From: Podarcis melisellensis
Lineage: Eukaryota
Assembly: GCA_964234715.1 (NCBI GenBank)
Contig: OZ174275.1
Reading direction: 5' to 3' (one strand)
Length of the DNA: 64,000 nt
The position numbers were made by a program, and so were the translations under genes. Below are positions 41,501-64,000 of this stretch, one piece after another. The stretch's first letter is position 1; every line of letters starts with the position of its first letter. Below the pieces are notes generated by a model. It had not been told where the DNA came from and did no database searches. It was given only the letters and a program-made list of their open reading frames with translations.

Positions 41501-44500
41501 CATGATGGAAAAGGACTAGGGTATGTGTGTTCATGCCAAACTTTTCACAGGAAAGGTATGTTTTGAAGGAAATCCAAGAAGGTCTACTTCACACAGGTTT
41601 CCTGGAGAGCAGTTCTAGGCATAAGGGGCAAAAGGGGGTAAAGGGCAGAGTCATCTGAGTTAGCAGGAGAGCTTCAGGCAGTTGAAGGTGGTTGAGCTGG
41701 AGGCACAAAGGCCTTGAGTGGCCATATTTTGGGATAAAAGAGCAAAGAGATGGACCTCTGGGCCTTAATTAGCCGTGTTTAGGGAAGTTTTTAATTTTTG
41801 ATGTTTTATTCTGTTTTTAATTTGATGGGAGCCACCCAGATTGGCTGGGGAAACCCAGCTGGATGGGCAGGGTATAAATAAATTATGATGGTGATGATCA
41901 TGATGATAACAAAATTAAAAAATTCCTTCCAGTAGCACCAGTAGCACCTTAGAGACTAGTAGCACCTTCAGATACATTGAGTGTATCTGCAGAAGTGTGC
42001 ATGTACACGAAAGCTCATACCAATAACAAACTTAGTTGGTCTCTAAGGTGCTACTGGAAGGAATTTTTTTTATTTTGTTTCCACTACAGCAGATCAACAC
42101 GGCTACCTACCTGTAACTAGATGATGATGATGATGATGGAGGGCTAACTAGGGTTCAGGGTCAACCCAATGTATTTTGGAGGTTCAGGCAAAAAAAATAC
42201 ATAAATCCAAATTGTACCTTCCAACGAAAAAATAGATAAATAAAAAGCAGACACTTTGCCACCCTTCAGTGGCAATCCAAGTCTGCTGCCTGAGGCAATC
42301 CACCGCCCCAGCTAATGGTACTGCCAACTGTTCACAACCCACTGCAAGCTTAAGCCACTTAACTCTGCACTGAAGCATAGACTTCATATTCACCGTGTCT
42401 GGCCCAGTCCAGGATTTATTAAAGTCAGGGATCAAATCTGCCATGAATATTATACACTGGTCGCATTTCTCAGCAGGCAACTCAAAGAGAACTCCTTTGA
42501 CTAGGGCCAGCCTGGATGTTCAACAGCCAGTCCTATTGACTGTGTTCCATCTTCACTAGTGGCTGTATTGTAGGTCATTTTAAGGTGAACAAGGTTTTAG
42601 AAAGTATTTATCCTCACACCTCCCTTGCAAAATGTGCCTGTCCCACAGTGATGCAGAGATAAGCACTACAATCCAGGGACACAGACCGAGGTTTTAACTG
42701 AAAACCTTCAACTTTGTAGTTAAAGCATTAGGTTTGTGTTTCCCAAACTTGGGTCTCCAGCTGTTTTTAGACTCCCATTGTCTCTGACCACTGCTCCTGC
42801 TAGGTAGGAATGATGGGAGTTGTCCAAAAACAGTTGGCAACCCAAATTTGTAAAACACTGCTGTAGATTGCCATTCTCACAATTAGGACCTCACTGGAGC
42901 AAACAGAATAGCTATCAGTGCTAAGAGCTGTTACCCATGGGTGTAACCAAGATTTGGGGGTGGGCAGGACTTTTGTTAGGGAGGCAGAACCAATGTGATT
43001 GGTCAGTTAAGTATTTCTATTGTTTTACTTGATCTAGAGGGGCAGCTGCCCCCCTTGGCTATGCCCATGCTGTTGTCTCAGTCCCCATGCACCCCAGTCA
43101 TGTGTTCTGTTAGACAATGCATTTGCCATTTCAAAAAAATCAGAACTCCTCAAACAGGACACTGGCCAGTCACTAAACCACAACTGCAAGCAATCAGACT
43201 TTCAGGTTTCCTTGTCCAGAAGGGAAAGCAATAGCTCCCTGAAACTCCGCACTAGTTTACACTGCATAGTCAGGAAAGTCACAGGAGCATTCCAACAGCT
43301 GAGGGGCAAACCCACAATACAGGCCTCATCGTAATACCGCACATAAAATACAATTGTCTGTTTAACTTCCAGAGTTACACAGATATCGCTTTGCAACTTA
43401 CTTTTCTGGCTCCCCGCCCCCTCCTGAGGAAAAGTAATCACAAACTAAATCAGTGGGGCCTGACAACTGGCCTGGTTTCAGTAGAGTTGTTAGAATTTTC
43501 CATATTTAACTTGTCCCCTGCAGAAAACTTTATGGTTACAATGAGGGAAGAATAATTTATTTGCTAAGGCTGAGAATTTTTAGAAGGATTAAGCAGTGCA
43601 GAAGAAGCGTACCTAAAATATTGACTTCAGCTGGCGCCATCCTTTCTAGAATGCGTAGATTAAGGTTGTTGCCATTGCACAAGGCAAGAAGCAACACCAT
43701 CCTGACTTTTAGATCTCAAGAGCAGAAAAGGATCAGATTCTCTTTTTTGCTTACAAATGGAACCTGGCACCATGGAAGATCTCAAACTAGTTTCACAACC
43801 GTGCCAAGTACTGCACTGTTCTTTGCCTCTTTCCATATATCTGCATCTCAGGTGGAGCACTCCCAAGTTACTTGTGACACTGCTCTCCCCCTTCTCTTTC
43901 CCCAGGGGCTTCAGTGTGACGTCTGGGGGGCAGACCCGTATCTTTAAGCCCATTTCAGTCCAGACCATGTGGTAAGCAAGGCTGTCAGGTAGGGTGAAAA
44001 GCGCAAGGACATGTGTGGGAAAGGATGAATGTGGGGAACAAGGATATAGTTGCCACTATTGCTTTTGGTAGGCTGGGAGAGGGGCATCATGGAGGAAAAT
44101 GGGAAGAGAGATGTGCATTTCTCTGATGGCAGTGGTAGCCTTCAGAGGATTTTTTTAGCGCATCTCTGATGTCTGATTGTCATCTCTGCTCTCAGGTCAG
44201 CGCTGCAAGTGCTGCACAAGGCATGCAGCGAAGCCATCTGCAACAACCATTTCCCAGGAGGCAGTGCGTTGAGCTGGACCGAGTGGTATCAGAAGGCTGT
44301 GAACTCGGAGCAGAGCTGCATTAATGAATGGCTAGCCATGTCCGACTTGGAATCTGTGCGGCCCACTTCTCCTGCAGCCTTCTCTGACCAGTCAGTGATG
44401 GCCCTTCCCCTCCTAGGGCTGGTTATAGGCTGTGAATGATGTAGTCAGCAAAGCTGCAGTGGTTCCAAGGTGGAACTCAATACCATGCAGTAGTCCAAAG

Positions 44501-47135
44501 CACAGACATTTCAGGTGGCCCTGCTAGCCAGTTTTAGGGACTACTGTGCAGAAAGTGCTTCTTCTGTAGGTCATGAAAGGGAAGGGTCCTTGCTTTTGGG
44601 TTTTTTTGTAATAATAAGGGAGGGAGGGAGATGCTGATCAGAGACACAGATCAGAGCAGAAGCCCACCCCAGTTCAGGTCACGTAGCATCACTTTTTGTG
44701 GTGCACTGGAGTGGAGTGGTTTGGGTACCAAACTAGTACTTGAGAGAGACCCAGGTTAACATTCTTACCTAGCCATTGAGTTCACAGGGTGATATTGGGT
44801 CAGTCAGAGCCTAACCTACCTCACAGCAACTTGTGAGGATAAAATTGAGCTGTGGGGGGGAGTAATCCTTAAGGCCCTCAAAGGAAGCTCAGGACATACA
44901 TGCAATAAATGAACGAGCACATTTACAAATGTGTAAAAGATACCTAGGGAAATGCAAAGCTTTGGCATGGTGTCAAGATTTGTAACCCTACTGCCAGTGG
45001 GGGAGGGATGCTCTAGGCATGCCATGGTGTCTGGGGCAGAGTCTGGCGAGCCAAGAGCTTTGCCGACCCTCCGTCTCTGTGCCTCAGGCCGACAGCACAG
45101 GAGATGACAGAGCGGATGATCCGGGCCAAGCTGCGTGAGGTGATGGCCACCACTGACCTGGAGAACATCACCTCCAAGGAGGTGGGATGTTGGGCCAAGG
45201 GGGTGAGGGAGGAGGGGGCGGGGGAGAGAGAATGTGAGGGAATGGAGACGTGTGTGAGGGGGTGTGTGTGAAAGAGAGAGGGTATGGGAGCAAGGTATGT
45301 AAAACAGGGACTGGGAAGGGAATGTGGGAAAGCAGGGGTATGTATAGGGGTTGGAGTGATGGGTGAGGGAAAGGAATGGGCGTGTCATTAAAAAGCAGCC
45401 AGGCTCAAAAGCAACCACAGGCACTCACAAGCTCCCTCCCTCTTCCTGCAGATCCGTACAGAACTGGAGCGGAGAGCCGGTCGGAGCCTGAACGACTATA
45501 AGGAGTTTATTGACAATGAAATGCTTCTCATTATGGCTCAGATGGATCGGCCCTCCAGGATTTTTGACTATCTCTACTTGGTGAGGAAGTACAGGAGAGG
45601 GACCCATGATGCCAGCAGACTGGAGCTCCAAGCCCCTAAAAATGGCAGTCCCTCCTCTCAACTTAAGAGTCCTCAAAATTCTTTCCTGGAATGGCAGGAA
45701 GATGGAAGCCTTGCTGTTATTTTGAGGCCTCCAGGCTTTGCCTTCCCTTCCACCATAAGAGGACGCAAAGCCCCCTGTAAAGCCTCTCCCTTATACTACC
45801 TACAGGGCCTTCTTGAGAGATAGCATGGGGCAGCAGATTTATATTCTTTACTTCATACAAAGTTGAAGATCACAGCAAGCAGCTAAGGCTGCAATTCTAA
45901 ATGGATGGTTTGCACTGAAATGGTTCCATCTTTGGTGGCCATCAGTCTAGCCTCAACAGGTGGTGGAACATACAGAACAGCCTTGGAAGCTGACCTAAGA
46001 AACTGGACAGGCGCTATTAAATTAGTATACCGCCCTATACCTGTAGGTCTCAGGGCGGTTCACAGTTACTCCCTCACATAAAAATCACAACCAAGCACAC
46101 CAGGAAGATGACTCTGCTATCTTTCTATATGCTGGCAGTTTTTCCTGTTGGGGACATATTCAAAACCTCAGTTCCTTCACCTACCCAGTCTGCAATGTTA
46201 TAAGCTAGGAGGGACTCTTCCACATGATTTGGCTAAATTTGTTCGGTTTTGAGTATTTAATGAGCAATTGCAGGATGGCTGAATGTTTGTGAACTATTTG
46301 CACTCGCCTGGGACTGAGCTCTGTGCATGGTGTTGTTCCTTTTTGTCCCAGGGCTCTGAATGGAATGCAGCCAACTTTGAGGAGCTTCAAAGGAACAGGT
46401 ATGTCACCAAAAGATGCTGCTCAGAGAGCAAGACTAGTACCTTCGGGAACTTCATCTGATCTGGATTCCTTGGACACTGAGATGACCATTTGGCACACCT
46501 CTCCATGTAAACTTGCCTTCTAGTCAGAAGGGATTTCTACTATGCATTCCAACCCGACTGAGATACTGAGCAACTGCAGTGGGGGTTGTTTAGGAAATGG
46601 GACATGGTTTAGTTAGTTGAGGCCATGCTTAAAACATGGTGAAAAAGAGCTGCTCACATTCTTGATTACTCCTTGCCTTGCCTTACAGGGTCAGCCACAT
46701 CCTTAATGTCACCCGTGAGATCGACAACTTCTTTCCAGAGCACTTTACGTACATGAATGTCCGGCTCTATGATGAGGAAACCTCACAGCTGCTGCCACAC
46801 TGGAAGGAAACTTACAACTTCATTTCGGCTGCCTGGTGAGAAGTGGACACCAAGGTGGTAGTTGTGATTTCAGCTGCAGCACTTGTGTATTGCAAGCTAG
46901 GCTTACCAACATGGTCCCCAGCTAGTCAATGGGATTGCAGGCACAGAAATGGGCTTTTCAGTGGGAATCCAAGGGCTGAGGTAGAAGAGAAGGGCTCCTG
47001 CCACAAAAAGCCCCCACCTCCCTGAATGAAATGTCAGCTGTTGTTTGAGAGGGCCTGTGATACCAGGTAGGACTGTCAACCTATTCTCTCCTTTCACCCC
47101 AGAATATTTTGTAGGTGAGAATTTGGCACAGCCCT

Positions 47136-47184
<49 letters not shown>

Positions 47185-49583
47185 CCCATCAGACTGGGTT
47201 GCCTCAATACACCCCCTACTTCATTAAGAAGTACGATGCCATCAGTTCCTAGCTTTTGATCTCTGTCAGATTTGACACAGCCAGTTACACGTTTGGAAGA
47301 GCAAGCAGCTGAATTCATCCATCTCCTCCCAGCACCCTAACCACTACACCACACTGGCTGTTGAACAACCATAATGTTTTCCAAGCAGCAATGATAGTCA
47401 CTTGCTTGGATTCATCATGATCACAGCAGAGTGGCCTCAGCATAATATAGCTAATCTGTGCCTTGGCAAGTGTTGAGTTAGGCCAAGAAGCTGGGGTATC
47501 CTACGCTTGGCTGAAGGTACAGCAACTGGATGCTGAATTTCATGACTGTCCTGGGTGATGCTGTAGCCCTGCTTATAGCAAATATTCATTCCCCACAGGG
47601 CGCAAGGCTCTCGGGTGTTGGTGCACTGCAAGATGGGCGTGAGCCGCTCTGGCTCCACAGTGATTGCATATGCCATGAAGGAGTACGGATGGTCACTTGA
47701 GCAGGCCCTTTCCCATGTACGGGAACGACGCCCAATTGTCCACCCCAATCCAGGATTCATGAGACAGCTGGAGCTTTATCAGGGCATTCTGGACGCAAGG
47801 TAAATCCAAGGGGAGGGAGAGCAGGTCTGGTCACTGTGTATGTATGTGGGGAGGGCAAGGGAGACTGATGGGAGCTGCAGCTGACCAGCCTGATCAGACC
47901 ACAGCAGAAGGCTTTGTTTTTATTGTCCAAGAGCCAAACTACATGTTACATGCAACAGCATGATGATCCTCTTAGACTGGAAAATCTACTTTCAGTGGGG
48001 CTATTGGGATCAGAGAAGATCTCCCCTTCCTGGGATTCTAAGCACCTGTGTGCAAAGGCAAACAGGAAAGATTCCGTGTGGAAAAAAATGATGGGGGTGC
48101 CAAAGAGTGGCAAGGAAAAGATCCGGCATCCATGCCATCTGCTCCATTTCCAACTTCCACTCCAAAGCACTTCTTCCAGTTAAAAAGGGCTGTTTCGTAT
48201 TGTTATGCACACGATATTTAATCTTAAACAGGGAGCCACTGATAGCAAAATTGTCCCACATTAATAGTGCAGCAAAAATTAAATAGACATTGTGATTATC
48301 TTTAATATGTGTAATTAATGCTTCTCACTGTAATTCAAAGTCCATTCTTTATTTGGTTCTTTATTTAGCATTCCTTGCTGAATAATCTCTTACATTGTTC
48401 ACCTCATGTTACTACACAGCCGACACAGCAGCCTATGGGAACAAAAGGCAGGAGATGCCCACTCAGAAGATTCTCCAGATATAAGTGATGCCAGCAGTGA
48501 TCCTTCAGGAAGCCCATACTACGAGACTTTAAGCTCAGAAGAAGAACCAGAGGAGCCAGTGACAACCCCCCAGTATTGCTTTCGTCCTTTGCGGGAACCT
48601 CCTGAAGAACCTCACCATCCCGTGGACCCTCCTGATAGTCCCAGGCTCAGTCTTCAGGCCACAGAAGAACCTGGGGCATCGGATGACTCTGGAGCTGAGG
48701 AAGTGCGAAGACACCTGGCTACGATGAGAGTGCCAGAGAAGCCAGCCACGCTCAGACGGGAACGCATCAATCTCTATGCTGTCATGCGCAGCATCAGTGA
48801 AATGGACAGCCCAGAACGCCACATCTCTGTACCAGAGTGTGCTGCTGAGGAAGAGGTAAGAGGGTCATGTAAGGGCATGCTCCCAGAGAGAGGCAAGTGG
48901 AAAGAGTGAGGGAACTTATAATGGAGCCTCAAGGCATACAAGGGAAACAAAAATGGCAATGCATAAATCAGTGGATCTGAAACCTCAGCTAATGCGAAGA
49001 TGAATGGTAGAGGCAGGATGAAGAAAAATCCTTTGTAATTGCTGGCCCTCATTCAGTCTACCTCTTCTTCCTCCAACAGGTATTTCTTCATGATGAAAAG
49101 AAGAAGACTGTGACCTTTGAGCCATTTCCCCAAAATGAAGAGAATTCAGGGTCAGGAACAGACTCTACAGCAAAGGTGCCACTGCCAGAGGAAGAGGAGG
49201 CTCAGGGTCGCAGGGCCAGGCGACGCGGGCGGAGGGCTCACCGGGGACGTCGCCATGTCTGCAAGCAGCTTTCATACTACCCGGCACCAGGCAGGGTGCG
49301 CAAAGTTGTCCAGCGCATGGAGGGCCCTGTCCCATTTGGCCGCAGGCCCGCCTTACAACACCGGCTCTCTGTGGCTCAGCTGGCTGATGCTGCCCTGGTG
49401 GTGAGCCGGGCCAAGGAGTTTGAGGGATACACAGATCCCGAAGGACCAGACAAGCTCCGGTCCCCTTCTCCTCAGGAATCCAAACCTGAGGAAAGCACTG
49501 CCCTCTGTTCTTCCTTGCCCTGCTCCCGGTCCCGGCGGATGGTTCGCCAGGCCAGCGTAGACATGGACCCCAACTCAGGGTGA
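29140..49583 (+). CDS. SSH3: Protein phosphatase Slingshot homolog 3 (SSH-N, DEK-C, dual-specificity phosphatase domain); whole spliced CDS span, 14 exons, 2304 nt = 767 aa
   Basis: join(29140-29205,34132-34169,36508-36697,39674-39792,40985-41056,43906-43971,44196-44390,45088-45181,45452-45580,46352-46398,46689-46835,47599-47799,48420-48855,49080-49583). MALVTV..SP start, catalytic loop [13 protein letters not shown]3-type tail motifs [12 protein letters not shown] and [10 protein letters not shown]. Syntenic with ANKRD13D. Confidence 0.95.
34132..34169 (+). CDS. SSH3: SSH3 exon 2
   Basis: ttgcag|[12 protein letters not shown]|gtaagg; 38 nt, restores phase. Confidence 0.85.
34900..35165 (-). 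mobile_element. Degraded L2-clade LINE fragment
   Basis: Minus-strand peptide [21 protein letters not shown]. Confidence 0.6.
36508..36697 (+). CDS. SSH3: SSH3 exon 3
   Basis: [14 protein letters not shown]...[18 protein letters not shown]. Confidence 0.92.
38345..38809. mobile_element. Tc1/mariner-superfamily (Tc2/pogo-like) MITE with TA target duplication
   Basis: TIRs CTGTATTTTTCGCCCCATAGGA... / ...GTATAGGGCGAAAAACACGG, flanked by TA at 38343-38344 and 38810-38811; internal repeats of cccataggacgcac. Confidence 0.8.
39674..39792 (+). CDS. SSH3: SSH3 exon 4
   Basis: [19 protein letters not shown]...LLGVDFPEE. Confidence 0.92.
40703..40930. mobile_element. hAT-superfamily MITE with 8-bp TSD
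   Basis: TIRs CAGGGGTCAGCAAACT / AGTTTGCCTACCCATG; perfect TSD GACTATAA at 40695-40702 and 40931-40938. Confidence 0.85.
40985..41056 (+). CDS. SSH3: SSH3 exon 5
   Basis: [24 protein letters not shown]. Confidence 0.92.
41910..42120. mobile_element. Penelope-like retroelement end with inverted terminal duplication
   Basis: aattccttccagtagcacc(ttagagac) inverted against gtctctaaggtgctactggaaggaatt; gaaagctcat motif typical of squamate Penelope ends; inserted in a (GAT)n run. Confidence 0.6.
43906..43971 (+). CDS. SSH3: SSH3 exon 6
   Basis: [22 protein letters not shown]. Confidence 0.92.
44196..44390 (+). CDS. SSH3: SSH3 exon 7
   Basis: [13 protein letters not shown]...[17 protein letters not shown]. 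Confidence 0.92.
44705..44850 (+). mobile_element. MIR/CORE-like SINE remnant
   Basis: gagacccaggtt...gggtgatattgggtcagtca..agcctaacctacctcacag..ttgtgaggataaaat. Confidence 0.55.
45088..45181 (+). CDS. SSH3: SSH3 exon 8 (DEK-C)
   Basis: [31 protein letters not shown]. Confidence 0.92.
45452..45580 (+). CDS. SSH3: SSH3 exon 9
   Basis: [43 protein letters not shown]. Confidence 0.92.
46352..46398 (+). CDS. SSH3: SSH3 exon 10
   Basis: [15 protein letters not shown]. Confidence 0.92.
46689..46835 (+). CDS. SSH3: SSH3 exon 11
   Basis: [48 protein letters not shown]. Confidence 0.92.
47139..47184. repeat. (TAA)n microsatellite, about 15 units
   Basis: Direct reading; source of the poly-I and poly-L ORFs. 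Confidence 0.95.
47599..47799 (+). CDS. SSH3: SSH3 exon 12 (catalytic HCxxGxxR loop)
   Basis: [24 protein letters not shown]...[18 protein letters not shown]. Confidence 0.94.
48420..48855 (+). CDS. SSH3: SSH3 exon 13
   Basis: RHSSLWEQK...[17 protein letters not shown]...AAEEE|gtaaga. Confidence 0.9.
49080..49583 (+). CDS. SSH3: SSH3 exon 14 (stop)
   Basis: caacag|[18 protein letters not shown]...[16 protein letters not shown]. Confidence 0.9.
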   Translation, partial: VFLHDEKKKTVTFEPFPQNEENSGSGTDSTAKVPLPEEEEAQGRRARRRGRRAHRGRRHVCKQLSYYPAPGRVRKVVQRMEGPVPFGRRPALQHRLSVAQLADAALVVSRAKEFEGYTDPEGPDKLRSPSPQESKPEESTALCSSLPCSRSRRMVRQASVDMDPNSG

Positions 49584-50261: not shown

Positions 50262-50267
50262 AATAAA
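50262..50267 (+). terminator. Probable SSH3 polyadenylation signal
   Basis: AATAAA about 680 nt after the stop, with downstream U/GU-rich sequence. Confidence 0.6.
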
Positions 50268-51439: not shown

Positions 51440-52330
51440 AAATACCGGAAGTAGATCCCTGTATGTCACTCTACACAGTGAAGTCTATGCTACCTAGCGA
51501 GTAACTGTCTCGTTCTCGCCGCTAGGTGGATGTTGAAACAAAACTACCGTGACCATCATGCCCTGCGGCCACGGCAAGGGGGCGGGGACTAGGACACATG
51601 CGCAGAACGCTCTTTCCTTGTTGCTATGGGAGCCTACGGCAGGGCAGCTGCTGGGAAGAGGTAGAATCCGCGTTCTCTTTTGTTCCTCCGCTGCGACGGC
51701 GGCATTTTGGCACCTGTCGCGACTCTTTCCCGGCTGGGGTTTGCGCCGGCGGCGGCCCCTCGTTGCCATGGCGGCGTTGGCGTTGCCTCTCGCGTTCTAA
51801 AGATGCGCCGGGAGACGGCGAGGGAGGCAGCGAGGCCTCCTTCTGGGAGGATGTCGCGTCCGCAGATCATCCACAGCGGCCACTTCATGGTGTCGGAGCC
51901 CCACGCCGACCCGGACCCGGACCCCGAGGCGGCTCTGAGCCAGCCAGGCCAAGGCGCCCCGCCGAGCGCGGCGGAGCGAGCGAGAAGGGCCGGCTCCGCG
52001 CGGAAGGCCGCGGCAGGGAAGGCTGGTGACGGGGCCCAGCTGGCCTCCGCCGCCGCCGCTTACGACTTCGACACGGTGGACGAGGCCGCGTGCCTGTGCT
52101 ACCGCTACGGGCCTCGAAGCAGCGGAGCCCTCAGCATCGACCCTTCGCTCACGAAGCTCTTCGAATGCATGACGCTCGCCTACAGGTAAGGGCGGGGCGG
52201 GGCGGGCGGGGCAGCCCCCGAGCCAACGGGGGCAGCGGGAAGTGTGTGTCTGGGGGGAAGGGATAGAGAAGGGCCCGCCCGGAGGCTGCCTTTCTTGCCT
52301 CCGGCCCTTGCCTCTCGGGATGCATTCAGG
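51440..52330. promoter_or_regulatory. CpG island promoter of the Mondo-family gene (ETS CCGGAAGT 51445-51452; X-box-like GTTGCTATGGGAGC 51620-51633 and GTTGCCATGGCGGC 51762-51775; GC-box array at the start of intron 1)
   Basis: CpG-dense region over exon 1; motifs read directly from the sequence. Confidence 0.75.
51803..52185 (+). CDS. Mondo-like exon 1 (MCR1, MCR2/NES)
   Basis: ...MSRPQIIHSGHFMVSEPH...YDFDTVD...SIDPSLTKLFECMTLAY|gtaagg. Confidence 0.88.
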
Positions 52331-55300
52331 GAACCAGACTATGCCTTGGGAACTGCAGCACGACCAATTAGCCTGCCATTCATACGCAAGATATACTAGT
52401 ATGCATGCAGATAAACGATACTAATAAGAGAATCCAAATGCAGGTAACTTGGCATCGTTAAGTAAAAGCCTCGGATTCCTTGTAACTACAGACATAAAAG
52501 AAATTTTCACCCAAGGAGGCATTTCAAAGGCGCGGCTTGTCTTGTCTGCCATGCCAAGTTGAAATCTAAATGAGTGTATAAATCTAGATTTGTAGCTGCC
52601 AGTTAAGAAGTGCTCCCCTACAATCTTTCCTTCCACTTTAAGAACTTCCACTTATGAGAGGGAGGTTCTCACGCATCACGTGTGAGAACAGAGTAGTCAA
52701 GGAACGAAACTGACATTTTAGAGTCAGAAACGCATACATCTGTTGAAACCAACAAATCCAGTTTTGTAGTTAAAAAAAAGCAGGGGGCCTAGATATGACA
52801 TAGAGTTGTGCCTGGTTCTCCAGCATTCTACTACCACTTGCTTTCTGGCACAGTATTATTTATTTACTCACTCTGGTTGCAGTTCTACATACAAGGGATT
52901 AGAATCAATGAATAAGTCTCATTGAACTCCGTAGGAGTTACTTCTGAGAAAAGGTGCAGAGGATTGCACTGCTACTTATTTTACTGTATTTGCAAGGTGC
53001 CCAATAGCGTCTCTAGTGGCATATGGGAATATGTTCATATAAGCATAGCATAGAGGAGGGGAACTGACACTAACTTTAGTCTTCCCAGAAAATCATGTCA
53101 GAAAAGCACATTTTGCTGCTTAGACAGTGCTTCTGACCCATACATATTACTTTGGTTTTTATCTACCCCATTTTCAGTGTATCTCATACCCCAGTTGACT
53201 TGTTCATTAAGCTGTCAAGTCCTTTAATCTTTAATCAGCTCTCAGGTCAGACTCCTTTAATGTGTGGAAAGGAGAGAAAGTCTTAAATAATAGAAATTTC
53301 TATTTGACAGAGTGTAGTGGATAGATAGTTATCATGAGTATTAAAGTGAGAAATGGACCATGACCCAAGTTGTCCCTGCCAGATGCTAGAGACATAATAT
53401 CAAAAAGCTGTCTGGGTTATGTGGGATTAAATATCATAAAGTATATCCACTGTGGTAAAGGTCTGTTTTGTCCCCTTTCTGATAGTAGTGTTGCTAAAGC
53501 ATAAAAACTTGGCAAATTATATAAACAGGAAGTTTTCACAGGACATGTATTTCTTCCTGTGCTCCCTTTAGCTTCTTAATAGAATTTTAATGTGAACTCT
53601 TGTGTAGAATTTTAATGATTTATGTTAAGGAACTAATTGGCTTGTTTTGCACAATCTAGTTTTAATTATTGTTACCTGTGCTGTACTACGTTGAAAATTA
53701 ATACATGCCCTGAATTTTTTGAATTGGTTGCCCCCCGCCCCAACGTTTCTGTGAAGTAGGAAAGAAACTTGAGCAATGAAACAGGCTGCTTAGGGAGGTA
53801 ATGAAATTTGCTTCGTTGGAAACTTTCAAAGAAAGGCTGGGTGGGCAACTCTATGGAATGTTTTAGATTACTGTGCTTCAGGGCATAACTTGGACTAGAT
53901 TAGGGATCAAAAACTTGCAGTCTGCTCGCTGCATATGGCACCCAGAACACTTGATTGCTGGCTGTGTGCCTCTTAAAGTTTAGAAATTCTAGTGTTTCTT
54001 TTTTTAAAGTAACATTTGACATGATTGCATAGACCATTTTGGACATGTGATGGTAACTCACTTTTCTGGTTCTTGGTGCAAACAGCCTATCCTGCACTGG
54101 TCTTGACCTTTGGGATTTCTCCTAGTTGTAAAAATAATTAAGATAAAAAGTACCACACTGTTTTAACCAGTATCCCTTTCCCAGGAATGTCTGGCCTTGA
54201 TGTTAGCATATAGAGTTTTGAATTAAATAGCTGTAGTCCTTTCATATACAAGTTGTATTCCTCCCAGAGTTGCACATTCAGCAGTATGTTGCAGACTAGC
54301 TTCCCAACCAATATATTTGCTGCAAAATTACTGCTTCTGCCATTGAGATCATCTCCTTGTAAATATATATCTATGAAGCAGCTTTAAATCAAGAAAAAAA
54401 AGTGTCCCAGCATTGTCAGCAACCTAGTGAACTGGAATAGATCCGCAGACCTGGGTTTTTTGGGTCGGTTCTTTGACTTCCAGCATTATGACATTTCAGA
54501 CGTTGACTCGTTTAGGTATTTTCTAGTTAATCTCCCACAACATTATGAGATGTCATCTTGGACTAAGCAAAAGGACAAAGGTAGTATGAGGAGTTTGAAT
54601 GCCTGAAGAAATCCCGGCAACAGAGTCCTTTTTGACATTAACTTTGTCAAAAGCTCAGTTTACCATATACCTGAGCCCACTGGTTTCAGTGGCAGTGCAA
54701 GCCTCTGCCCCCAGCCAGTGAAATAGACATTACATTTTGCTCAGTAGTAACAGAGAATCATATATTGAATCTTTTTCACAGCTATGCATTAGAACTGTGA
54801 CTGATCTATCTGCCTGGGATTATTCATTATTCATTCTGTCTCAAGCAGGTGCAATTTTGAATAAGAAGCTGTTGTGGCAGAATAGCAAAGGGGCATGGGT
54901 TCTGAACAGTATCTTGTTTGTTCTTTTACACAACTGTTCAGTGAAACAGCTGCCATGTTTGAAATGTAATGGGGCAGAGTCCAATAGGGTGGCATGAGAG
55001 TGTGGTCCAATACGCTTAGTGTGAGGATTTTCATGTGGGATGTTTGTGCACCTTCAAGTGAACTTCTGAAGGGCAGAATATGAGTGTGTGTTGCTACTGA
55101 TTAAACAGGGTGTGTGGGTGGAATGCAAGCTGCCAGTGTCTGCCTGTATTCCTAAGGAGATGCTGGCTCATTATAATTTCTTCTCCTTCGTAAGAACATA
55201 CAGATGAGGCACAGTTTTACTTTAGCAGTGGAAGAAATAAACCATTGAATTAACCTTCCAAGATGTTTTTAATCATTTGGATTACTCAAGTCAATACTAT

Positions 55301-58300
55301 ATTTCTCTGTTGTAGAGATACACTCACTAACAAATTGGTTATTAATAGCAAAACACAAATCATTTAACTGGATGTGTTTTAAATTATGCTGCATTTCTTC
55401 AGAATAATTGAATTACCTTAGGTTTTGTCCAGGAAATAGTTGTCCAGCACTCACCGACTCTTCGTAGATGGGGTTCTGCAACAATAATGAATGGGGAAGA
55501 CCCCTTATAGTAAGGCTGGGAGTGGGGGTTATTTCCAGATCTGCCACCTAAAGCCAGGGCTATTTTTTCTTCTGTCATAATTGCCACATGGAATTCCACC
55601 CCAAGGCTGGTATCTATAGCGTACTTTTTAAAAGCAAGATTTTGTCCTTTGTTGAGGAGCTTCATCAGAAAAACAGGAAGGCAGTATACATAGAGAGCCA
55701 TGTAGTTCTGTGGGCAGAGCTTCTGTAATCAACACAGCTTCTTATCACCTCTATAATTATGTTCTACACTTATCAGCATATGCTACTTCTAACCTGTTCA
55801 TTTTTCTCCTTCTCCCACAGTTTGCTCTAAAAAGTTGAGGAGGAATCAACATCCAGTGAGAGGTTTAGAATAAAGCAGGCATATTGGGTCAGTCTGTGCA
55901 AAAGGTGAACATTTGTAGACATCTGAGTAGTTTATAGTTTTGAGTGCAGAATTTAGTTTTTTTGGCACAGATTAGTAATAAAGTGTGGCTATAGAATAGT
56001 CAAGCTTATTAAAGAGATGTTCCCGTTCAGTGTGTTTTGAGCTGCCTTCTTCTTCTTTGGGTGTTGCCTGGCCCTGTTTCCCCTTGAAAGCCAGATATAC
56101 TTGGTATTACAAGAGGGGTTTTTTTGGCTTTCTCATTTGTAGTGAGAAACTTGTCTCTCCCAAATGGAAAACCTTCAAAGGGCTGAAACTGCTACAGCGT
56201 GACAAGATTCGACTCAATAATGCCATCTGGAGGGCCTGGTATCTGCAGTGTAAGTAGCCTGGAAGAAGGTATTTAAAACACAACAACAAAAAACCCAACC
56301 ATATAAAAGGTGATCTGATCTGGGCAGATTAGGTGGGAAGCACCAAATTCTGTGTATAAATTCACAAAAAATGGGTTCTTCCTCCATCCCTACACGTGTT
56401 TTCCATGACTTCCTCAACCAAGGAGACTGTTTCACACAGAATTATGTATTGCAAGTTTGCAAAGCTTTATGCTAGCAAAAGTCACATATTAATTGCTTAT
56501 GGATTTAAAGCTCTTCAGCTCTACTGCCTTATTTAGTGGATGCTGAAATGGGAGCGACTGCCAGCCAGCCAGCAAGTATTTTCTCTGTTTGGTCCTGCTT
56601 GAAGCTGTGCTGCAGATTACAGCCCCTTTTCTGCTATTTCATTCTGGATGCAGATGTGGAGAAGCGGCAGAACCCAGTGTGCAGTTTTGTGACCCCACTA
56701 GAGTGCAGTGATGTAGATGTGCACCGCAAGCCTGAGGTGAGCAAAGGTTACTTGGGCCTTTCTTACTTAAGAACGTACAAAGAAGACAGATTACACATTT
56801 CTGTAAGTGACCCCTGGCTGCACCTTTATTTGGCAGGCTGTCATCATGGAAGGAAAGTACTGGAAACGCCAAATTGGGGTTGTCATCAGGGAATATCACA
56901 AATGGAGGTTGTTTTCCTATACCCAGGTAAGGGTCTTCTCCAGCAAGATGTGTTGTACTTCATATAGCTTCCCTTCACCCCTAGATGACATGTTCCACCC
57001 AAGCTCATACAGTCCTTTTTAGTGTCAACCAAGGAAATCAGGTAGCCAGTCCAGAAGCACCTTGGTACTCCATTGTAAGAAGGTGGATTTTCTAGATGCT
57101 TCTTGCCAGGCTATCATAGACTGGATCTGTTGGTTATGAGGTGATCTGGTACTAGACTGGCGAGGCTACATTTCTGTCTTACTCTGATGGGTGCCTTGGC
57201 CTATAGACTCATTTCCGCAGCTGCCAAAGGCTCTCATTCTCTTGCCCTCTCTCTCACTTCCACAAAGACACACACTGGTCACCCAGCTATCCCTGTGTGA
57301 TTATTGTGGTCCGCGATGGCTTTCTGAGGCCTCAAGTGTTCATTGTTGTTGTTGTTGTAGTAGTAGTAATAGTACATTATACCTAGCCCTTCCTCCCAAA
57401 TGTGTCCAGGGCAGCAATGAGCCAGATAGGATTTTATTTAGCCACCTATGGTTTTTCTCTAGCTAAGTATTGTAATTGTAGTACTTTCAGTGGCCTAATC
57501 CTAAACATTCTGTGCATTTTTTTATAGGCTTCAAAGAAGATGGATAAACCCGTCTATGGTTCAGCTCAGGTGCTATTTTAATGCCTTGTTCCTATACTGC
57601 ACCCTCCAGATTCCCCTTTCCCCATGGCAGAGGGTGGAATTAAAAACGCTTGGGGGTTGTCCGCAGCCATTCAGTATTCCAGCCCCTCATTTGAGTTTGC
57701 CTAAAGTTGGAGTTCACAGCTCTTTCTCTCCCATTCTGGACAGGAAGTAGCTGATGATGTTCCAAGGGCAGAGCTGAAAACGGATGGAACAGATGCATGC
57801 CCCATGGACCTTGACCCCTTGCATGACCTGGATGCACTTCTGGACACCTTCATTTCTAGCCGCAACCCTTATGGTGGCCCCAACCTCCGTGGCCTTGGTG
57901 AGAGGCCTTGCTTTGTGCTCATTCCATCTATCTCTGGATCTGTCCCTTTCTACCAAGAAACCCTTTAAGTTTTCTCCACTGTCCCCAGAGGCTAGTACAG
58001 ATGCCTCTAGAGGGTGGAGAGAGGTTTTGAAGTATCTCCATGTGAGAGCCAGTCCCTTGCTTGTGAACCAGAGAACAATTCTTTGCTATGGAACAAAGTA
58101 GCGAGCGAGTGATATTATTTCTCATTTTGTGTCTTCAGCTCACCAGGGAAATGCAGATATGATCCAGCCCACCCTGACCCAACTGCACCCCATCTTTGGG
58201 GAGGAGTTTATGGACTTGGACCCCATTCAAGGTAACAACAGAGGTTTATATGGCTGTACTTAGTGGTAAGGTGGCGCATCTCAAAGCTGAAAGACATCCT

Positions 58301-61300
58301 CTGAAGCACTTTGTATGGCTTCTTAAGACCACTCCAGACTGTGTTTAAATTATGTATCCATACTGTACACACTTGAAAGAATTCCGTTTGTTTATAAATG
58401 CTACTGAGTACATGCTGCTAGGATCTCCTGATCAGCTGCAATTCCCTGCAGTGCTTATCTGTAAAAGAGCCCTTGGATTCCTCAGAATTGCAGCTTGCAT
58501 ATTTACTAAACTCACTGTTAGGGAGAAAACTGAAAAGTGTGTCATTAAAGCCCAAAAATCAAATAGAAACATTTATTATTATTATTTTAAGCCCACAAGT
58601 TAATCACCAGTTTTGAAAGATTAACTTGTGACCTCAAGAGTAAATAACATCTGAGTCTGGGTCACCAAAGTGGGCTGAAAGCTGTCACTGGTGAGAGGAG
58701 ACTATTTCCAAACTGACATTGATGAAATTCTAGTTCACCCAAGGCCAGAGCAGAATGCTGCTGAGCAAACATGATACGTCCTGGTAAGGCTAGACATTAT
58801 TTAAATCAGTCAGCATGCACGTAAAAATCCTCTTTTGGGCGTCCAGTGCTCTAAGAGAAGACTCATTCTCCATATAATCACATGCATACTGTGCTTTATA
58901 TATTGTTTGTCCCCTATCCCATTTTCTGAATCAGCCAGGACAAATTCTTCAGAGCCACTGTTTATCCCCTTTTCACAGGAAGAATAAAGTAGGCAAATTA
59001 ATCTTGTATGAATTCTTAATTTGAAAAATCTTAAACTTACGAGTTGGTCATCTCAAAATTTCTACTTGCAAGTATAGCATCTACATATTGAGCCTATTTC
59101 AGTCTCATTTCTGCCACTCCGACACATAACTCTGAAATCAGCAGTCCCCACCTGCATATTGCTCCAGTTCTTGACTTGAGTTTCTCTACCAGTTGAGATA
59201 TCCTGGATTTTAGGTCTCATCTTTCTTCGAAACCACCAATTGATGTCTTCTTGTATGGTGGATGTGAATGAATGAATGTTTATTATTACGACCAAACAGC
59301 CAGCATGCTACCTGTATGGTGAAATCCTGATGATTCCTTGCTTTGTTGATTCAGACACACCAGCCAGTTATCTTCTGCCAGTTGCTCTTTATCTCCTCCC
59401 AGCCTTTTAAATATTTGCTTTCTTTTCACAGAATTCATCAATTCCTGTCGTTCTCAGCCCATGAACCAGGTAAGGAGAATAAATTTATCTGATAGCTTAC
59501 AAACTCCTTGGGCTTTTGCAGCCCCTGATGCTTACTGCAGATACTGGTCTGTGCTTGATTTTGATTTTGGAAAGGCAATAGCCTTTTTCAGCATTGGGGA
59601 AAAAAAATGAGCAGTGGGAGTTCCCCACTTGTATAATTTTCAGTGCAGCCATCTCCAGCCTGGACTCAGGAGTTGTGTTTGATTTGCACTCTCTTCTCCC
59701 CCCTCTTAGGCTCCTGCAGTAACGGATACTAGTGCTTTGAACCAGTGCAACTCAGATACACCTCTCATTGCCCCTGGGACCAAGGATCTCCCACCGCCTG
59801 GAGACTCTCTCAACCCCATTCCCATCTCACTGGATGTGGAGCCGCCTGTACCTTTGAATGGACAACAGACCTTCCTGCCATTCTTCCCCACCTCCCCACT
59901 GAGGATCAGCCCGCCGCCTGTCTCTCCCATCTTGCGCATGCAGCCTCAAACCACTTTGGTCTTCTCTGTCATCACGCACACAGGATCAGAAACAAATTCT
60001 CCGTCTGTATTTCGGGACACTTTTGCTGTGCCAGTCTCTGCTCCTCCACCCAAGGATGGGAAATGCAGACACCTGCAACGGATTGCTCCAGCACCCTCCT
60101 CTAGCCAGCAGCCAACCCTTCCCGGTGCTCCGCTCCCCTGCCTGCTTGCAACTGGTATGTCCCTGCAAGGACAGGCTCTCCGTAGGGGAAATTGAGGCAT
60201 TGCTGACCTAGACTACAATGCTTCTCTAGGTCCATTTGGAGTTTTAAGTCATACTGCAGAATTCTCCTTTCTTTTTGGTTGTTGTTTTCTGAAGCAAATC
60301 TCACCAGGATCAACTTTTGGAATCCCTAATTTAAACAACTGCATGCATTATTAGTGTTTATTTTGATATAATTATCTGAAGTTGGAGTTTAGCTTCATAC
60401 TTGGGAATCACTGGAAGCAAAAGCATTTTTCTGTACTGGAAAAATAAAATATGTGGTCCAGGGAGATAGTTTTTTGTGTTACTGCAGAATTTTAAAATTA
60501 TATACAGTGGTACCTCGATTTTCGAATGTAATCTGTTCCAGAAGACCGTTCGAGTTCTGAAACATTCGAAAACCGAAAACTCAGTATAGAAATTTTTTGA
60601 TGTGGTTTATTTATTGTTTATGACTTTTGTAATTATGTAAATCTTGTTATGCTGTAAGCCGCCTTGAGCATTGGAAAGGTGGCATACAAATTAAAAAAAT
60701 GATGAAGAATTGAGTATGGAAAACTCAATACAGAAGCCGCGTGGCATGTTCGACTTCTGAGGCATGTTTGAAAACCGAAGCATTTATTTTCGGGTTTCCG
60801 ACGTTCAAAAACTGAAATGTCTGTCAACGGAGACGTTCAAAAACCAAGGTACCACTGTATCTGACTTGAGCTGATAGGCATTACGTAACAGTGCCTGTAT
60901 CTCCTTCAGTGGATTTAGGGTTTAGCCTTGCAGAAATTGTGTGTCAAAACTATGTACTGACTAGTCTGTAGAATAGTAAAATGGTTAGTCCACAGGTATT
61001 GGAGACGGATTTAAGGTGGCATTCTTACTTGCAACTATACATATGTGTAAAGATGTCTGGGAGCTGCTGTTTGGAAAGGGAAAGAAAAAGTCCACTATGT
61101 CCAGATTCCTGCTTTGATCCCCTTCTTGCTTCTCTGGAGTGTAGTTCAGCTTTTTGTTTTGATGCAGCCAGCAGTTTGAACCAGGTAAATCAAGCAAAAC
61201 TGCAAATGTCAACATTCGTCCAAATGCTTCACAGTTAAACAGAAAACCTTCAACTCATTAGTAGAAGTGAAATGACAGCTCATTAACATAACTATGCATA

Positions 61301-63553
61301 TTTACTAGCTTTTTAAAGTTATATTTTAATTTTTCTTAGATCTACAAGTGAGCACAGATTTTCTTGACCCATTTCAGAACAAGGCTCTTGTGCCTTGTAG
61401 CTTTTTTGAACGGGGAAAGTTGTCAAGAGCTGTAGAGTCTTCTAATGTGCAAGCATTATGAAGAGAGAATCTGTAACTATGAAACTTTCCTCTCTACTCC
61501 ATTTAAAACTCACACATAAAGGTCCAGAATTCCTATCCTCGTGTGTCTGGTGGCAAAGTGGGTACCAAACAGTTGGTGTCAGATTGGCTGGTACATGCAG
61601 GAATTTTATGAGACGCTAATGGTTATGGGGAAACCAGGCCTAGGTATGTTTTGGAAGGGATCCCTGAGGCAAGGATGCTCATTGGCCTCTCTGTTGGGTA
61701 AGGTGCCATGCATTTAAGTAGAGATTATTGGCCCGAATTGTATTTTCAGTTGTGGTGGGTGGGATTTCATAAAGCAGCAGACTCCTTTTCATTAAATAAA
61801 TTCTGCCACATTCAAAAACTTGGTCTACTGGTGAGCAGCTAATCTGAAACTGTGTAGTTACAGGGAGTGAGTGGTGCTGCTTCAGCCAGCCAAGTTTTGT
61901 ACATGCATTGGGGGTTAATACATAGAGGCTGGGAAAATAAGAACATCTCTTTCATCTCTAGGTCCTGCCCCACTGCCCCTCACTCCAGTCATGAACTCTG
62001 TGCAGGTAAGGATGCTCTCCTCTGCCACCTTCCGTCTGCGAGGCCTCCTATCTGTGTTCTGCTTTTTGCCTCCTTGGAGTTGACAGGCGGCGTATTTTTC
62101 TATCTTTCTGTTTGGCTGCTCTCTCTTTCTCTCAACCCTGCTTTTCCTCTTCCACAGGTGTGTGGCTTCCCAAAGCCCCCTGCGAATATGCTGAACTCAT
62201 TCTCGGCAACGGTGAAGTCTCCTCCGCTTGCCTCTGCTGCTGCTTCCCCTGACACTGGTAAGCTGGCTCAGGAGGGTGCAAAGTCACTTGGCCTCTCTTC
62301 TTAGCAATACCTCATCCACTTTCACTGGATTGGTCTATATGCCGTGCCAAAGTAGAAATTGAATACACACCTTAAGAGGAACTCACCTACCACAGTATTT
62401 TTGGGATTATTTCAGGTGCCAAAACCAAGGAGAGAGCTGAGGACAACACTCTCTGCAAACCCCAGGAAGTGGACAAATGCTGTACTGCCAAGGTAATAAG
62501 GATACCCACACCACTGTACCCCATCTTGTTGGCTTGAGCATTGTGGGAGAAGGCATCTTTTCTCAAAGACGATAGCCAAAGGGGTAGTCACCTGGCAGTG
62601 TCTCAAATCATGGCTTGATTGGCTCTTGCAGGGAAGTCGCAGATCAACACTTACCTCGGCTGACTATGCCCGCCGTAGGGTCATCAGCTCCGGCTTCAAC
62701 ACTCTTGCCACTCTGGTGTTGACAGGACCTGATCAAAGCAGCACTAAGGTACGCATCCCCCACTGTACCAGAGGGTGGAAGGGCACATATTCTTTGCTGT
62801 TTGTCCAGTCCTCCCAATTTGCTTTGTGAACCTGCTGGAGCCATTCTTGTGGTCTTTGCCTTCCCAATCCATTTTACACCTTTACTCTACCCCCTCACCT
62901 CCCCAGTTCAGCAAAGCGATGCTCCTGCAGAAAAGTGCGGCACATGTGGAAAGACTGCAGCAAGAGCGCCGACAAGCTCAGGAGACAGTTGAAAGACTAC
63001 GTGGGGAAATCAAAGAGCTGAGCACTGCCATTGAGTGAGTTGCGGGGCTGGCTTAAGGGGTTTTCATTGGATCAGGGATACAAGTTAAAAGGTGAGAGGG
63101 GAACTCCTGTCAACAAGTTGTGGCTTTTCTCTTCCCTGCAGTGACTTTCAGCGCCAGCTTCCACCTACGGGAGCTCCTGTGCTGCCACCACAGTCAGATC
63201 AGGCTTCTCAACTCTATGAAGAGTATGTGCGCAAGCGCACCCTGCAGGACTGGCGCTTCTGGCTTGTATCCACCAGCGAGCATGTGGGATGGGATGGGAC
63301 AGGTTAGGGTGCAAGAAAGCAAGCCAGGGGAGGCATTTGGCATGGCATTAGTGGCCTGCTGGGTGCTTAAGGGGAGCAGGGAGACTTGGCTGCATAGGCT
63401 CCTTAACCTCTTCCAACCTGCAGTTCAGCATGGTGATTAAGCCACTCTTTGAGAGCTACACCAGGACAGTGAGCACAGGCAATGTCAAGGAATTCTGCGA
63501 CTCAGTGTTGAGCTGGTTGGAGCAGCACTGCACCCTGCCCATCTTGCGCCCTG
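51803..63553 (+). CDS. Mondo-family (MLXIP/MondoA - MLXIPL/ChREBP-like) bHLH-ZIP protein, probable third paralog; 16 exons seen (about 718 codons), final exon beyond the window
   Basis: join(51803-52185,56143-56249,56654-56736,56837-56926,57528-57569,57744-57897,58139-58231,59432-59469,59710-60154,61962-62005,62158-62257,62416-62492,62632-62748,62907-63034,63142-63265,63424-63553), open throughout. MCR1 QIIHSGHFMVS, MCR2 IDPSLTKLFECMTLAY, MCR3 KLVSPKWK..RDKIRLNNAIWRAWY, MCR4 EGKYWKR..IREYHKWR, MCR5 GNADMIQP, bHLH-ZIP, and DCD/WMC FWLFSMVIKPLFESY..WLEQHCTLPILRP. The start could instead be the ATG at 51851. Confidence 0.92.
56143..56249 (+). CDS. Mondo-like exon 2 (MCR3, 14-3-3-binding helix)
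   Basis: SEKLVSPKWKTFKGLKLLQRDKIRLNNAIWRAWYLQ|gtaagt. Confidence 0.93.
56654..56736 (+). CDS. Mondo-like exon 3
   Basis: YVEKRQNPVCSFVTPLECSDVDVHRKPE|gtgagc. Confidence 0.92.
56837..56926 (+). CDS. Mondo-like exon 4 (MCR4)
   Basis: AVIMEGKYWKRQIGVVIREYHKWRLFSYTQ|gtaagg. Confidence 0.92.
57528..57569 (+). CDS. Mondo-like exon 5 (small)
   Basis: ttttatag|ASKKMDKPVYGSAQ|gtgcta; 42 nt, phase 0/0, position matches the small exon 5 of Mondo genes. Confidence 0.65.
57744..57897 (+). CDS. Mondo-like exon 6 (MCR6 region)
   Basis: EVADDV...PMDLDPLHDLDALLDTFISSRNPYGGPNLRGL|gtgaga. Confidence 0.8.
58139..58231 (+). CDS. Mondo-like exon 7 (MCR5)
   Basis: AHQGNADMIQPTLTQLHPIFGEEFMDLDPIQ|gtaaca. Confidence 0.9.
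59432..59469 (+). CDS. Mondo-like exon 8 (small)
   Basis: tttcacag|EFINSCRSQPMNQ|gtaagg; required to convert phase 1 to 0. Confidence 0.75.
59710..60154 (+). CDS. Mondo-like exon 9 (proline-rich region)
   Basis: APAVTDT...FSVITHT...QRIAPAP...CLLAT|gtatgt. Confidence 0.82.
60505..60857. mobile_element. Tigger/pogo-like MITE with TA TSD and a probable nested retroposon 3' tail (about 60590-60700)
   Basis: TIRs CAGTGGTACCTCGATTTTCGAA / TTCAAAAACCAAGGTACCACTG with TA on both sides; repeated ttcgaaaaccga units; internal AT-rich ...tgtaagccgccttgagc..gaaaggtggcatacaaat segment. Confidence 0.8.
61962..62005 (+). CDS. Mondo-like exon 10 (small)
   Basis: tctctag|GPAPLPLTPVMNSVQ|gtaagg; phase 1 to 0. 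Confidence 0.7.
62158..62257 (+). CDS. Mondo-like exon 11
   Basis: Long pyrimidine tract, ccacag|VCGFPKPPANML...SPDT|gtaagc. Confidence 0.75.
62416..62492 (+). CDS. Mondo-like exon 12
   Basis: tttcag|GAKTKERAEDNTLCKPQEVDKCCTAK|gtaata; phase 1 to 0. Confidence 0.7.
62632..62748 (+). CDS. Mondo-like exon 13 (degenerate basic region, helix 1, loop)
   Basis: GSRRSTLTSADYARRRVISSGFNTLATLVLTGPDQSSTK|gtacgc. Confidence 0.88.
62907..63034 (+). CDS. Mondo-like exon 14 (helix 2 and leucine zipper)
   Basis: FSKAMLLQKSAAHVERLQQERRQAQETVERLRGEIKELSTAI|gtgagt. Confidence 0.92.
63142..63265 (+). CDS. Mondo-like exon 15 (start of DCD/WMC)
   Basis: DFQRQLPPTGAPV...YEEYVRKRTLQDWRFWL|gtatcc. Confidence 0.92.
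63266..63423 (+). other. U12-type (minor spliceosome) GT-AG intron
   Basis: 5' splice site GTATCC; perfect U12 branch site TCCTTAAC at 63400-63407, 16 nt before the end of the intron. Confidence 0.8.
63424..63553 (+). CDS. Mondo-like exon 16 (DCD/WMC)
   Basis: FSMVIKPLFESYTRTVST...WLEQHCTLPILRP|gtatgg. Confidence 0.92.
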
Positions 63554-64000
63554 GTATGGATCAACAAGGAAATCTAGAAATGTCTTTCCCTTCACTGACC
63601 CATCTCTCTCCCCCCCCCCCCATGGCTTTCAATGATCCTTGCCTACCTTCTGCTCTGAAATCTAGCACGTGCTTGTGTATCATTCACCCATCCTACTCCT
63701 GCTTGAAGTACTCTTACGTTCACACGTAACTAAGAGAGTGGAGCAGAACCATGGCTTACCAATTATACTCCACATTCCTGATTCCCTTTTCATGCCTTGC
63801 TAAGTTACTAGACACAGTTGCCCATCACTATGATCCTTTCCTTGCCCTGAAGCAAGATTATTGGGCACTGCCTTAAAGCAAGGCCCAGATGTGACCTTAG
63901 GAGTTACCTGGCTTTGTGGTGTTTAGGAAAAAAAACTAGCTGGAGATGCCAGCTGTTCTCAAAAGTCTTCTATTCCTGATACTTCCAGAAGACTTGAAAG

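Follow-up and report, generated by a model that had tools for sequence, protein, structure and literature searches.

Two Mondo proteins are known as Mlx partners in sugar-induced transcription in vertebrates, MondoA (MLXIP) and ChREBP (MLXIPL), and a phylogenomic study of these genes recognizes only two vertebrate paralogs, arguing that further duplicates would be disruptive (PMC4766361). Both belong to the class B E-box binders (Myc/Max/Mlx/Mondo), bHLH-ZIP proteins (with a basic region, a helix-loop-helix and a leucine zipper) whose basic region carries a His5-Glu9-Arg13 triad. His and Glu are the ancestral state of the entire Max/Mlx network, and basic-region positions b5, b9, b12 and b13 are near-invariant across all of its proteins (PMC3177325). 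Glu9 bonds to both C and A in the half-site; when Asp replaces it, binding is abolished in the bHLH-ZIP proteins tested, Asp being too short (PMC6337544). Natural carbohydrate response elements (ChoREs) require two cooperating heterodimers, and ChREBP with a mutant basic region is a dominant negative that blocks the glucose response (PMC1761440). The subject here is a gene in a 64,000-nucleotide stretch of DNA from Podarcis melisellensis (contig OZ174275.1; this whole stretch is termed the window). By architecture and tree it is a third Mondo paralog beside MondoA and ChREBP, and its Glu9 is replaced by Asp. No description of a third vertebrate Mondo paralog was found in the literature searched, most subscription journals lying outside its coverage.

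The basic region is encoded by exon 13, whose translation reads G-S-RRSTLTSADYARR-RVI.... Position b5 is Leu (CTT, 62650-62652) and b9 is Asp (GAC, 62662-62664), just as the initial annotation had read them, while b12 and b13 are both Arg. The register with ChREBP is ungapped, and the family profile aligns b5, b9 and b13 with His, Glu and Arg in the solved structures of Pho4 (1A0A) and MITF (4ATI); a mis-registered alignment is rejected on these grounds. Exon 13 alone gave no match to a solved structure, and P0001 is an unrelated chance match. The initial annotation went too far in stating that only the RR pair remains, since the RR at b1-b2, Thr at b4, Ser7, Ala8 and the helix-1 Ile also match ChREBP; the Ala at b11 is present in the DNA-binding Pho4 as well. 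The Pfam HLH match begins at profile position 12 of 53 in the ortholog of Podarcis raffonei, and at position 1 in ChREBP and in P0077, a sequence described below. The basic regions of P. raffonei and Lacerta agilis are identical to that of the window gene, and that of Zootoca differs only at b6. A sequence error is rejected, as a DNA contig shows no differences and the same residues occur independently in P. raffonei and L. agilis.

Orthologs are located in squamates, tuatara, turtles, crocodilians, ostrich, emu, caecilians and salamanders; the window model was searched exon by exon, with full-length searches using the orthologs. In two trees, both unrooted and built without an invertebrate outgroup, the orthologs form a clade separate from MondoA and ChREBP, and an identity as a divergent form of either is rejected by them. 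The second tree is based on 401 conserved columns from which the basic region was excluded, with support of 100/99. The approximately unbiased (AU) test rejects a single clade of the tetrapod sequences with ChREBP (p 0.0003). P0077, from a vertebrate meta-transcriptome (runs SRR6291289/90), is the sister of all tetrapod sequences in the third clade and retains His5-Glu9-Arg13. AU tests reject reading it as an amphibian reversion or as MondoA (p 0.0001 and 0.0003). In these runs the third clade is represented by a full-length transcript (L002, L003) with His5-Glu9-Arg13 intact and a long 5′ leader. Fish orthologs sought with P0077 were absent from 207 candidates; a possible ortholog in zebrafish is si:ch211-110p13.9. 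There is no ortholog from a mammal, neognath bird, frog or ray-finned fish among the matches listed, the lists being capped or shallow.

Position b9 is Asp in all 38 tetrapod orthologs counted, and Arg occupies b12 and b13 in every one of them. One emu gene model, in which b9 is Asn, is left out of this number as an exon boundary looks mis-predicted. The His5-Glu9-Arg13 triad is present in bird ChREBP and in mammal and killifish MondoA sequences; a coelacanth MondoA model (P0080) that is out of pattern over the basic-region exon, most likely through a gene-model error, is not counted. Since His and Glu are the ancestral state of the network, the alignment is most simply explained if Glu9→Asp arose once, near the tetrapod base, and was then fixed. 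The sister position of P0077 with its intact triad therefore places the change near the tetrapod stem.

The remainder of the basic region varies. Position b5 is Phe in 24 orthologs, Leu in 5, Ser in 4, Pro in 4 and His in 1, and b10 is H, Y, C, R or Q. The initial annotation raised conservation of both substitutions under purifying selection, which holds for Glu→Asp (38/38) and fails for His→Leu, where Leu is one state of a free b5. Nor is its Val in place of Asn before helix 1 clade-wide, the Asn being kept in 14 of 38. The position after the helix-1 Ile, a basic-residue contact that is K/N in ChREBP/MondoA, is Ser in 34 of 38. One or two prolines are found within the basic region of most amphibians and some other orthologs, and iguanians, snakes, crocodilians and some turtles have as few as 2-3 K/R residues in it. 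The orthologs with Pro at b5 (P0066, P0071, P0072 and P0141) are from three salamanders and one caecilian. H724P at this position is reportedly an engineered DNA-binding mutant of MondoA; the b5 His is residue 725 of 920 in baboon MondoA.

The site rates divide the basic region in two. Positions b1-b6 evolve at 1.40, compared with 1.51 for the proline-rich linker, while b9, b12 and b13 have rates of 0.16-0.17. Helix 1 (0.58), helix 2 (0.65), zipper (0.72) and DCD (0.65) are intermediate, and the Mondo conserved regions (MCRs) are slow, at 0.20 for MCR1 and 0.38 for MCR2-4. No rate class is slower than that of Asp9, Arg12 and Arg13, and Asp9 never reverts to Glu although the tree length is 5.7 substitutions/site. 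Pairwise ratios of nonsynonymous to synonymous substitution (dN/dS) between lizard, agamid, snake and alligator are 0.11-0.28 for the whole gene, 0-0.07 for MCR1-5 and 0.07-0.17 for DCD, with dS near saturation in the deeper pairs. On these patterns of substitution, His5 and b1-b6 are released from constraint, and the basic region is a reshaped domain within a maintained gene and not a product of decay. A site of the protein kinase A type at b1-b4 as the cause of constraint is rejected, since RRxS/T occurs in only 12 of the 38 orthologs.

The slow trio of residues could instead signify a DNA binder of new specificity, in which Mlx reads the CAC half-site and the third paralog a different half-site through Asp9 and Arg13, so that under sugar regulation it would activate or repress a set of target genes peculiar to it. 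The absence of any return to Glu fits this explanation, given that Glu occurs somewhere in 13 of 26 Asp-majority columns, as do the retained helix-2 lysines and the precedent of the class C bHLH-PAS proteins (PMC8431614). Yet 6 of the 26 columns are invariant, so that the invariance of Asp9 is not extraordinary. Moreover, a new base-reading surface is expected to be more widely fixed than one in which b1-b6 evolve like an unstructured linker, with prolines in several lineages, b10 is variable and so few basic residues remain in the iguanians and other groups named above. A re-specified binder is considered fairly unlikely.

The sequence comparisons are better matched by an E-box-blind Mlx partner that would damp ChREBP and MondoA, a reading to which we give an even chance. 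The third paralog would bind Mlx via its HLH-ZIP and DCD, and would shuttle under the same control by 14-3-3, nuclear export signal (NES) and sugar phosphate as the other Mondo proteins. Either bHLHZ or DCD alone suffices for Mlx dimerization (PMC3323566). The resulting heterodimer would have one base-reading half only, and therefore no productive hold on CACGTG or on a tandem ChoRE. It would then compete with ChREBP and MondoA for Mlx, perhaps also forming spoiled heterotetramers, with the result that sugar-induced transcription would be damped. The motif Ser7-x-Asp9-x-x-Arg12-Arg13 would cap and stabilize the start of helix 1, with at most a backbone grip on DNA. In an AlphaFold2 model of low confidence the helix begins at b8 with Ser7 at the cap, and the model may be read as Ser7 capping the helix from b8 with Asp9 paired with the arginines. 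The monomer predictions have mean pLDDT (predicted local distance difference test) values of 53 and 62, and a fold search returned nothing usable.

Several observations weigh against this proposal. Arg12, Arg13, the loop Lys and two basic residues of helix 2 are invariant, and some DNA contact may be under selection because these Arg and Lys positions contact DNA in bHLH proteins. In Id1, unlike the third paralog, the profile match does not begin until position 21 and takes in no basic region. The engineered dominant-negative ChREBP lacks the RR pair (R673A/R674G; PMC1761440), which the third paralog keeps; from the numbering, Arg12 and Arg13 seem to be the arginines removed in that mutant. 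HIF-1a, SIM and AHR, natural proteins without Glu9, bind DNA beside ARNT (PMC8431614). Lastly, no ChoRE is found in the promoter or gene, and an Id-like feedback loop is thus not indicated. The Id-like Mlx sequester of the initial annotation is accordingly retained in part: loss of E-box binding on Glu9→Asp in other proteins (PMC6337544) and the dominant-negative action of ChREBP with a dead basic region (PMC1761440) agree with it, while 'Id-like' is analogy only, with Asp9, Arg12 and Arg13 invariant. The annotation itself had made room for binding at an altered site.

The invariant backbone-contact residues may also be viewed as those of a weakened ChoRE binder, where the Mlx half-site, the arginines and tetramer cooperativity would give low-affinity occupancy, so that the protein would act on DNA, as weak activator or as place-holder, and not as a soluble sponge. 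A strong E-box can stabilize binding at a poor neighbour within the tetramer (PMC1761440), conservation extends to MCR5, and amphibians have an intact MCR6. This explanation must however accommodate the abolition of binding by Glu9→Asp in tested bHLH-ZIP proteins (PMC6337544) and the further loss of His5, with Pro in its place in salamanders and one caecilian; were E-box reading important, retention or regain of Glu would be expected. It is rather improbable.

The gene model comprises 16 exons on the + strand (51851-63553), with canonical splice sites and a joined open frame of 702 codons. The gene extends past 63553, its final coding exon (17) lying outside the window. The exons and the basic region are as follows.

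Exon 1, 51851..52185, + strand: the model's start codon; MCR1 (51857-51904) and MCR2 with an NES-like helix (~52133-52183); inside a CpG island
Exon 2, 56143..56249, + strand: MCR3, the 14-3-3-binding helix
Exon 3, 56654..56736, + strand: between MCR3 and MCR4
Exon 4, 56837..56926, + strand: MCR4, with the signature V-I-R-E-Y-H-K-W-R
Exon 5, 57528..57569, + strand: in agreement with a contig loose end before 57734
Exon 6, 57744..57897, + strand: MCR6 (~57801-57860)
Exon 7, 58139..58231, + strand: MCR5
Exon 8, 59432..59469, + strand
Exon 9, 59710..60154, + strand: proline-rich linker
Exon 10, 61962..62005, + strand
Exon 11, 62158..62257, + strand
Exon 12, 62416..62492, + strand
Exon 13, 62632..62748, + strand: codes for the basic region, helix 1 and the loop; length 117 nt, phase 0, AG/GT flanks, in-frame skipping possible
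Basic region b1-b13, 62638..62676, + strand: Leu5 62650-62652, Asp9 62662-62664, Arg12 62671-62673, Arg13 62674-62676
Exon 14, 62907..63034, + strand: helix 2 and leucine zipper
Exon 15, 63142..63265, + strand: end of the zipper and start of the DCD/WMC Mlx-binding domain (W-R-F-W)
Exon 16, 63424..63553, + strand: continuation of DCD/WMC

The domain order is thus of the Mondo type, with MCR1-6, a proline-rich linker, bHLH-ZIP and DCD/WMC. MCR1-4, including the NES helix, the 14-3-3 helix and the MCR4 signature, and MCR5 are close to those of MondoA. MCR6 is proposed as a site for glucose 6-phosphate and for co-activator binding or activation, with the signature [ST]DTLF[ST] (PMC3323566). This signature is intact in amphibians and P0077 and altered in turtles and archosaurs. 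In the aligned squamates, the window gene included, MCR6 is four residues shorter than in tuatara, turtles, archosaurs and amphibians, and by this comparison the shortening is a second, later erosion within the third paralog. A glucose response is suggested by MCR1-4 only, MCR6 being eroded in sauropsids.

The hydrophobic cores of helices 1 and 2, most zipper positions and the DCD motifs linked to Mlx binding are preserved; among the last, W-[RK]-F-W-x-F-S and P-L-F are invariant. The initial annotation had described the zipper and DCD/WMC as well conserved, and their site rates (0.72 and 0.65) bear this out. Invariance extends to the Lys in the loop and to two residues of helix 2, its first Lys and a basic residue lying further on. 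Id proteins likewise keep the loop and helix-2 lysines, which are therefore not diagnostic.

Constraint is strongest on MCR1-4 and not on the bHLH, and exon 13 is skipped in frame in isoforms annotated for three snakes and two sea turtles. DCD also holds a cytoplasmic retention signal (PMC3323566). These features would suit a mainly non-nuclear protein, in which the N-terminal module and DCD form a cytoplasmic scaffold or sensor (for 14-3-3, mitochondria or Mlx retention) with a minor effect on ChREBP and MondoA targets, and the basic region would be a structural vestige. Both helices and the zipper are nevertheless still constrained, pointing to a bHLH-ZIP partner, and Mlx binding would in itself affect the network, so that we hold such a role to be decidedly improbable. 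The skipping isoforms (P0057, P0058, P0059, P0062, P0063 and P0065, from Crotalus, Candoia, Dermochelys and Chelonia) retain helix 2 along with the zipper and DCD. No joint that skips exon 13 is present among those listed for the lacertid contigs.

The gene model is 97.7% identical to the P. raffonei RefSeq protein 'MLX-interacting protein-like', and ~97% identical to the proteins of Lacerta and Zootoca. Contigs from three studies of related lizards, RNA-like by the tool's guess, are spliced over exons 6-16 at the modelled junctions. The joints around exon 13 are at 62490/62630 and 62746/62905 (GT..AG), and a contig loose end behind 63557 codes for the residues that come next in the orthologs. 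A DNA run contig over 60831-63600 has 0 differences from the window, although that run may be the source sample. With an upstream in-frame ATG (51803-51850), as used in the P. raffonei model, the protein would be 16 residues longer; there are thus two candidate starts. Sequence error, or decay of a redundant copy toward a pseudogene in particular lineages, would be in keeping with the lack of a mammal or neognath bird copy among the matches listed and with the relaxed b1-b6 half. Against it stand the open frame with its canonical splice sites, the spliced RNA-like contigs, the dN/dS of 0.11-0.28 and an Asp9 shared from caecilians to ostrich, and we regard it as extremely improbable. The initial annotation had named these same two possibilities as what might overturn it; neither held, with Asp9 in 38/38 orthologs and the gene intact and spliced.

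Two other genes are recognized upstream of the Mondo gene.

Slingshot (SSH3-like) phosphatase exons, 44197..48810, + strand: upstream neighbour and synteny marker, separate from the Mondo gene
ANKRD13-family exon, 17401-17493: upstream of the Mondo gene, Pfam ANKRD13_C

Upstream of the ortholog an SSH gene is found in an agamid and in a rattlesnake as well; downstream, the agamid and alligator have POLD4. Concerning an ohnolog origin in the early vertebrate genome duplications, the SSH and POLD4 neighbours are kept in reptiles, while the lone non-tetrapod-like sequence is P0077, which comes without synteny. Two Slingshot-named alligator gene models (P0146 and P0148) fuse SSH3 with the Mondo gene; this is probably an annotation artefact of the tight tandem layout. 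About 1 kb upstream of the CpG island a small CpG-richer patch (50770-50850) contains ETS- and YY1-like words by eye, and is a possible second promoter element. No ChoRE (tandem E-box, ≤2 mismatches) is found in the four loci scanned, and at 3 mismatches the window has 2 matches where ~4 are expected; ChoRE-driven feedback on the Mondo gene itself is rejected, there being none in its promoter or body. A near-palindrome in intron 1 (52664-52690) holds a perfect CACGTG (52677) with a spacing that is not that of a ChoRE. Intron 9 contains a high-copy interspersed repeat (60500-60860; depth >10,000 in the DNA run). An Rfam scan of 44000-64000 gave no match.

Compared with ChREBP and MondoA, the third paralog is alike in domain order and in its MCR and DCD signatures, and its exons, 16 inside the window and one past its end, agree with the 17 coding exons of the ancestral Mondo gene (PMC4766361). 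It differs by clade, by locus (SSH upstream, with POLD4 downstream in agamid and alligator), by the tetrapod loss of His5 and Glu9, and by the sauropsid erosion of MCR6. With Leu5-Asp9-Arg13, the window gene departs from the triad of the class B binders. MITF E213D and TWIST1 Glu117Asp are reportedly precedents for the Glu→Asp change, and are not counted as evidence here. The engineered dominant-negative ChREBP (R673A/R674G) and dominant-negative Mlx combine a disabled basic region with intact dimerization and block the glucose response (PMC1761440), although the former has lost the arginine pair and the third paralog His5 and Glu9. The likeness to Id1-4 and Emc (class D HLH) lies in the proposed action, dimerization with a shared partner that is withheld from DNA (PMC8431614). 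Id proteins are small, lack basic region and zipper, and target E proteins, whereas the third paralog keeps b7-b13 with the invariant Arg12 and Arg13, the zipper, DCD and a nutrient-sensing N-terminus. It falls outside the Id class, although by analogy it may work in an Id-like manner. In plant atypical bHLH inhibitors (HFR1, PAR1 and IBH1/AIF), which sequester DNA-binding partners, the basic region is degenerate and not deleted; they are of unrelated lineage and lack zipper, DCD and sugar-sensing module. The class C bHLH-PAS proteins HIF-1a, SIM and AHR resemble the third paralog in that b9 is not Glu and b13 is Arg, and they are obligate heterodimers with a CAC-reading partner (PMC8431614). 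They have PAS domains of their own, a conserved basic region and a defined half-site, whereas b1-b6 are unconstrained in the third paralog, and Pfam gives no PAS match in P0023.

Taken as a whole, early tetrapods may have made the third Mondo paralog into a dedicated glucose-gated antagonist of the Mlx network (or a re-specified partner) by one fixed Glu→Asp change; it would still be used by amphibians, reptiles and ratites, and mammals appear to have lost it. The chance of this history being correct is put slightly below even. A link to the feast-famine metabolism of ectotherms, suggested in the initial annotation, is unsupported, as the endothermic ratites ostrich and emu keep the gene.

The change is old, fixed, and located at the best-conserved residue of a well-studied family of metabolic regulators. 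Databases already contain proteins of the third clade, automatically named as MLX-interacting protein, as '-like' or as ChREBP-like, and these names allow confusion with MondoA or ChREBP in reptile transcriptome studies. A third Mondo copy kept across tetrapods with a near-invariant Glu replaced points to a way of retaining a duplicate, by dropping E-box reading while keeping sensing and dimerization. If the proposal is correct, this would be a natural bHLH-ZIP protein carrying Asp at a base-reading position; if a new site is bound, the bHLH recognition code would be extended. Should the third paralog indeed act as a brake, the wiring of sugar signalling would differ between mammals on one side and amphibians, reptiles and ratites on the other, and the protein would be a natural inhibitor of the Mlx network, a missing negative arm of ChREBP/MondoA signalling.

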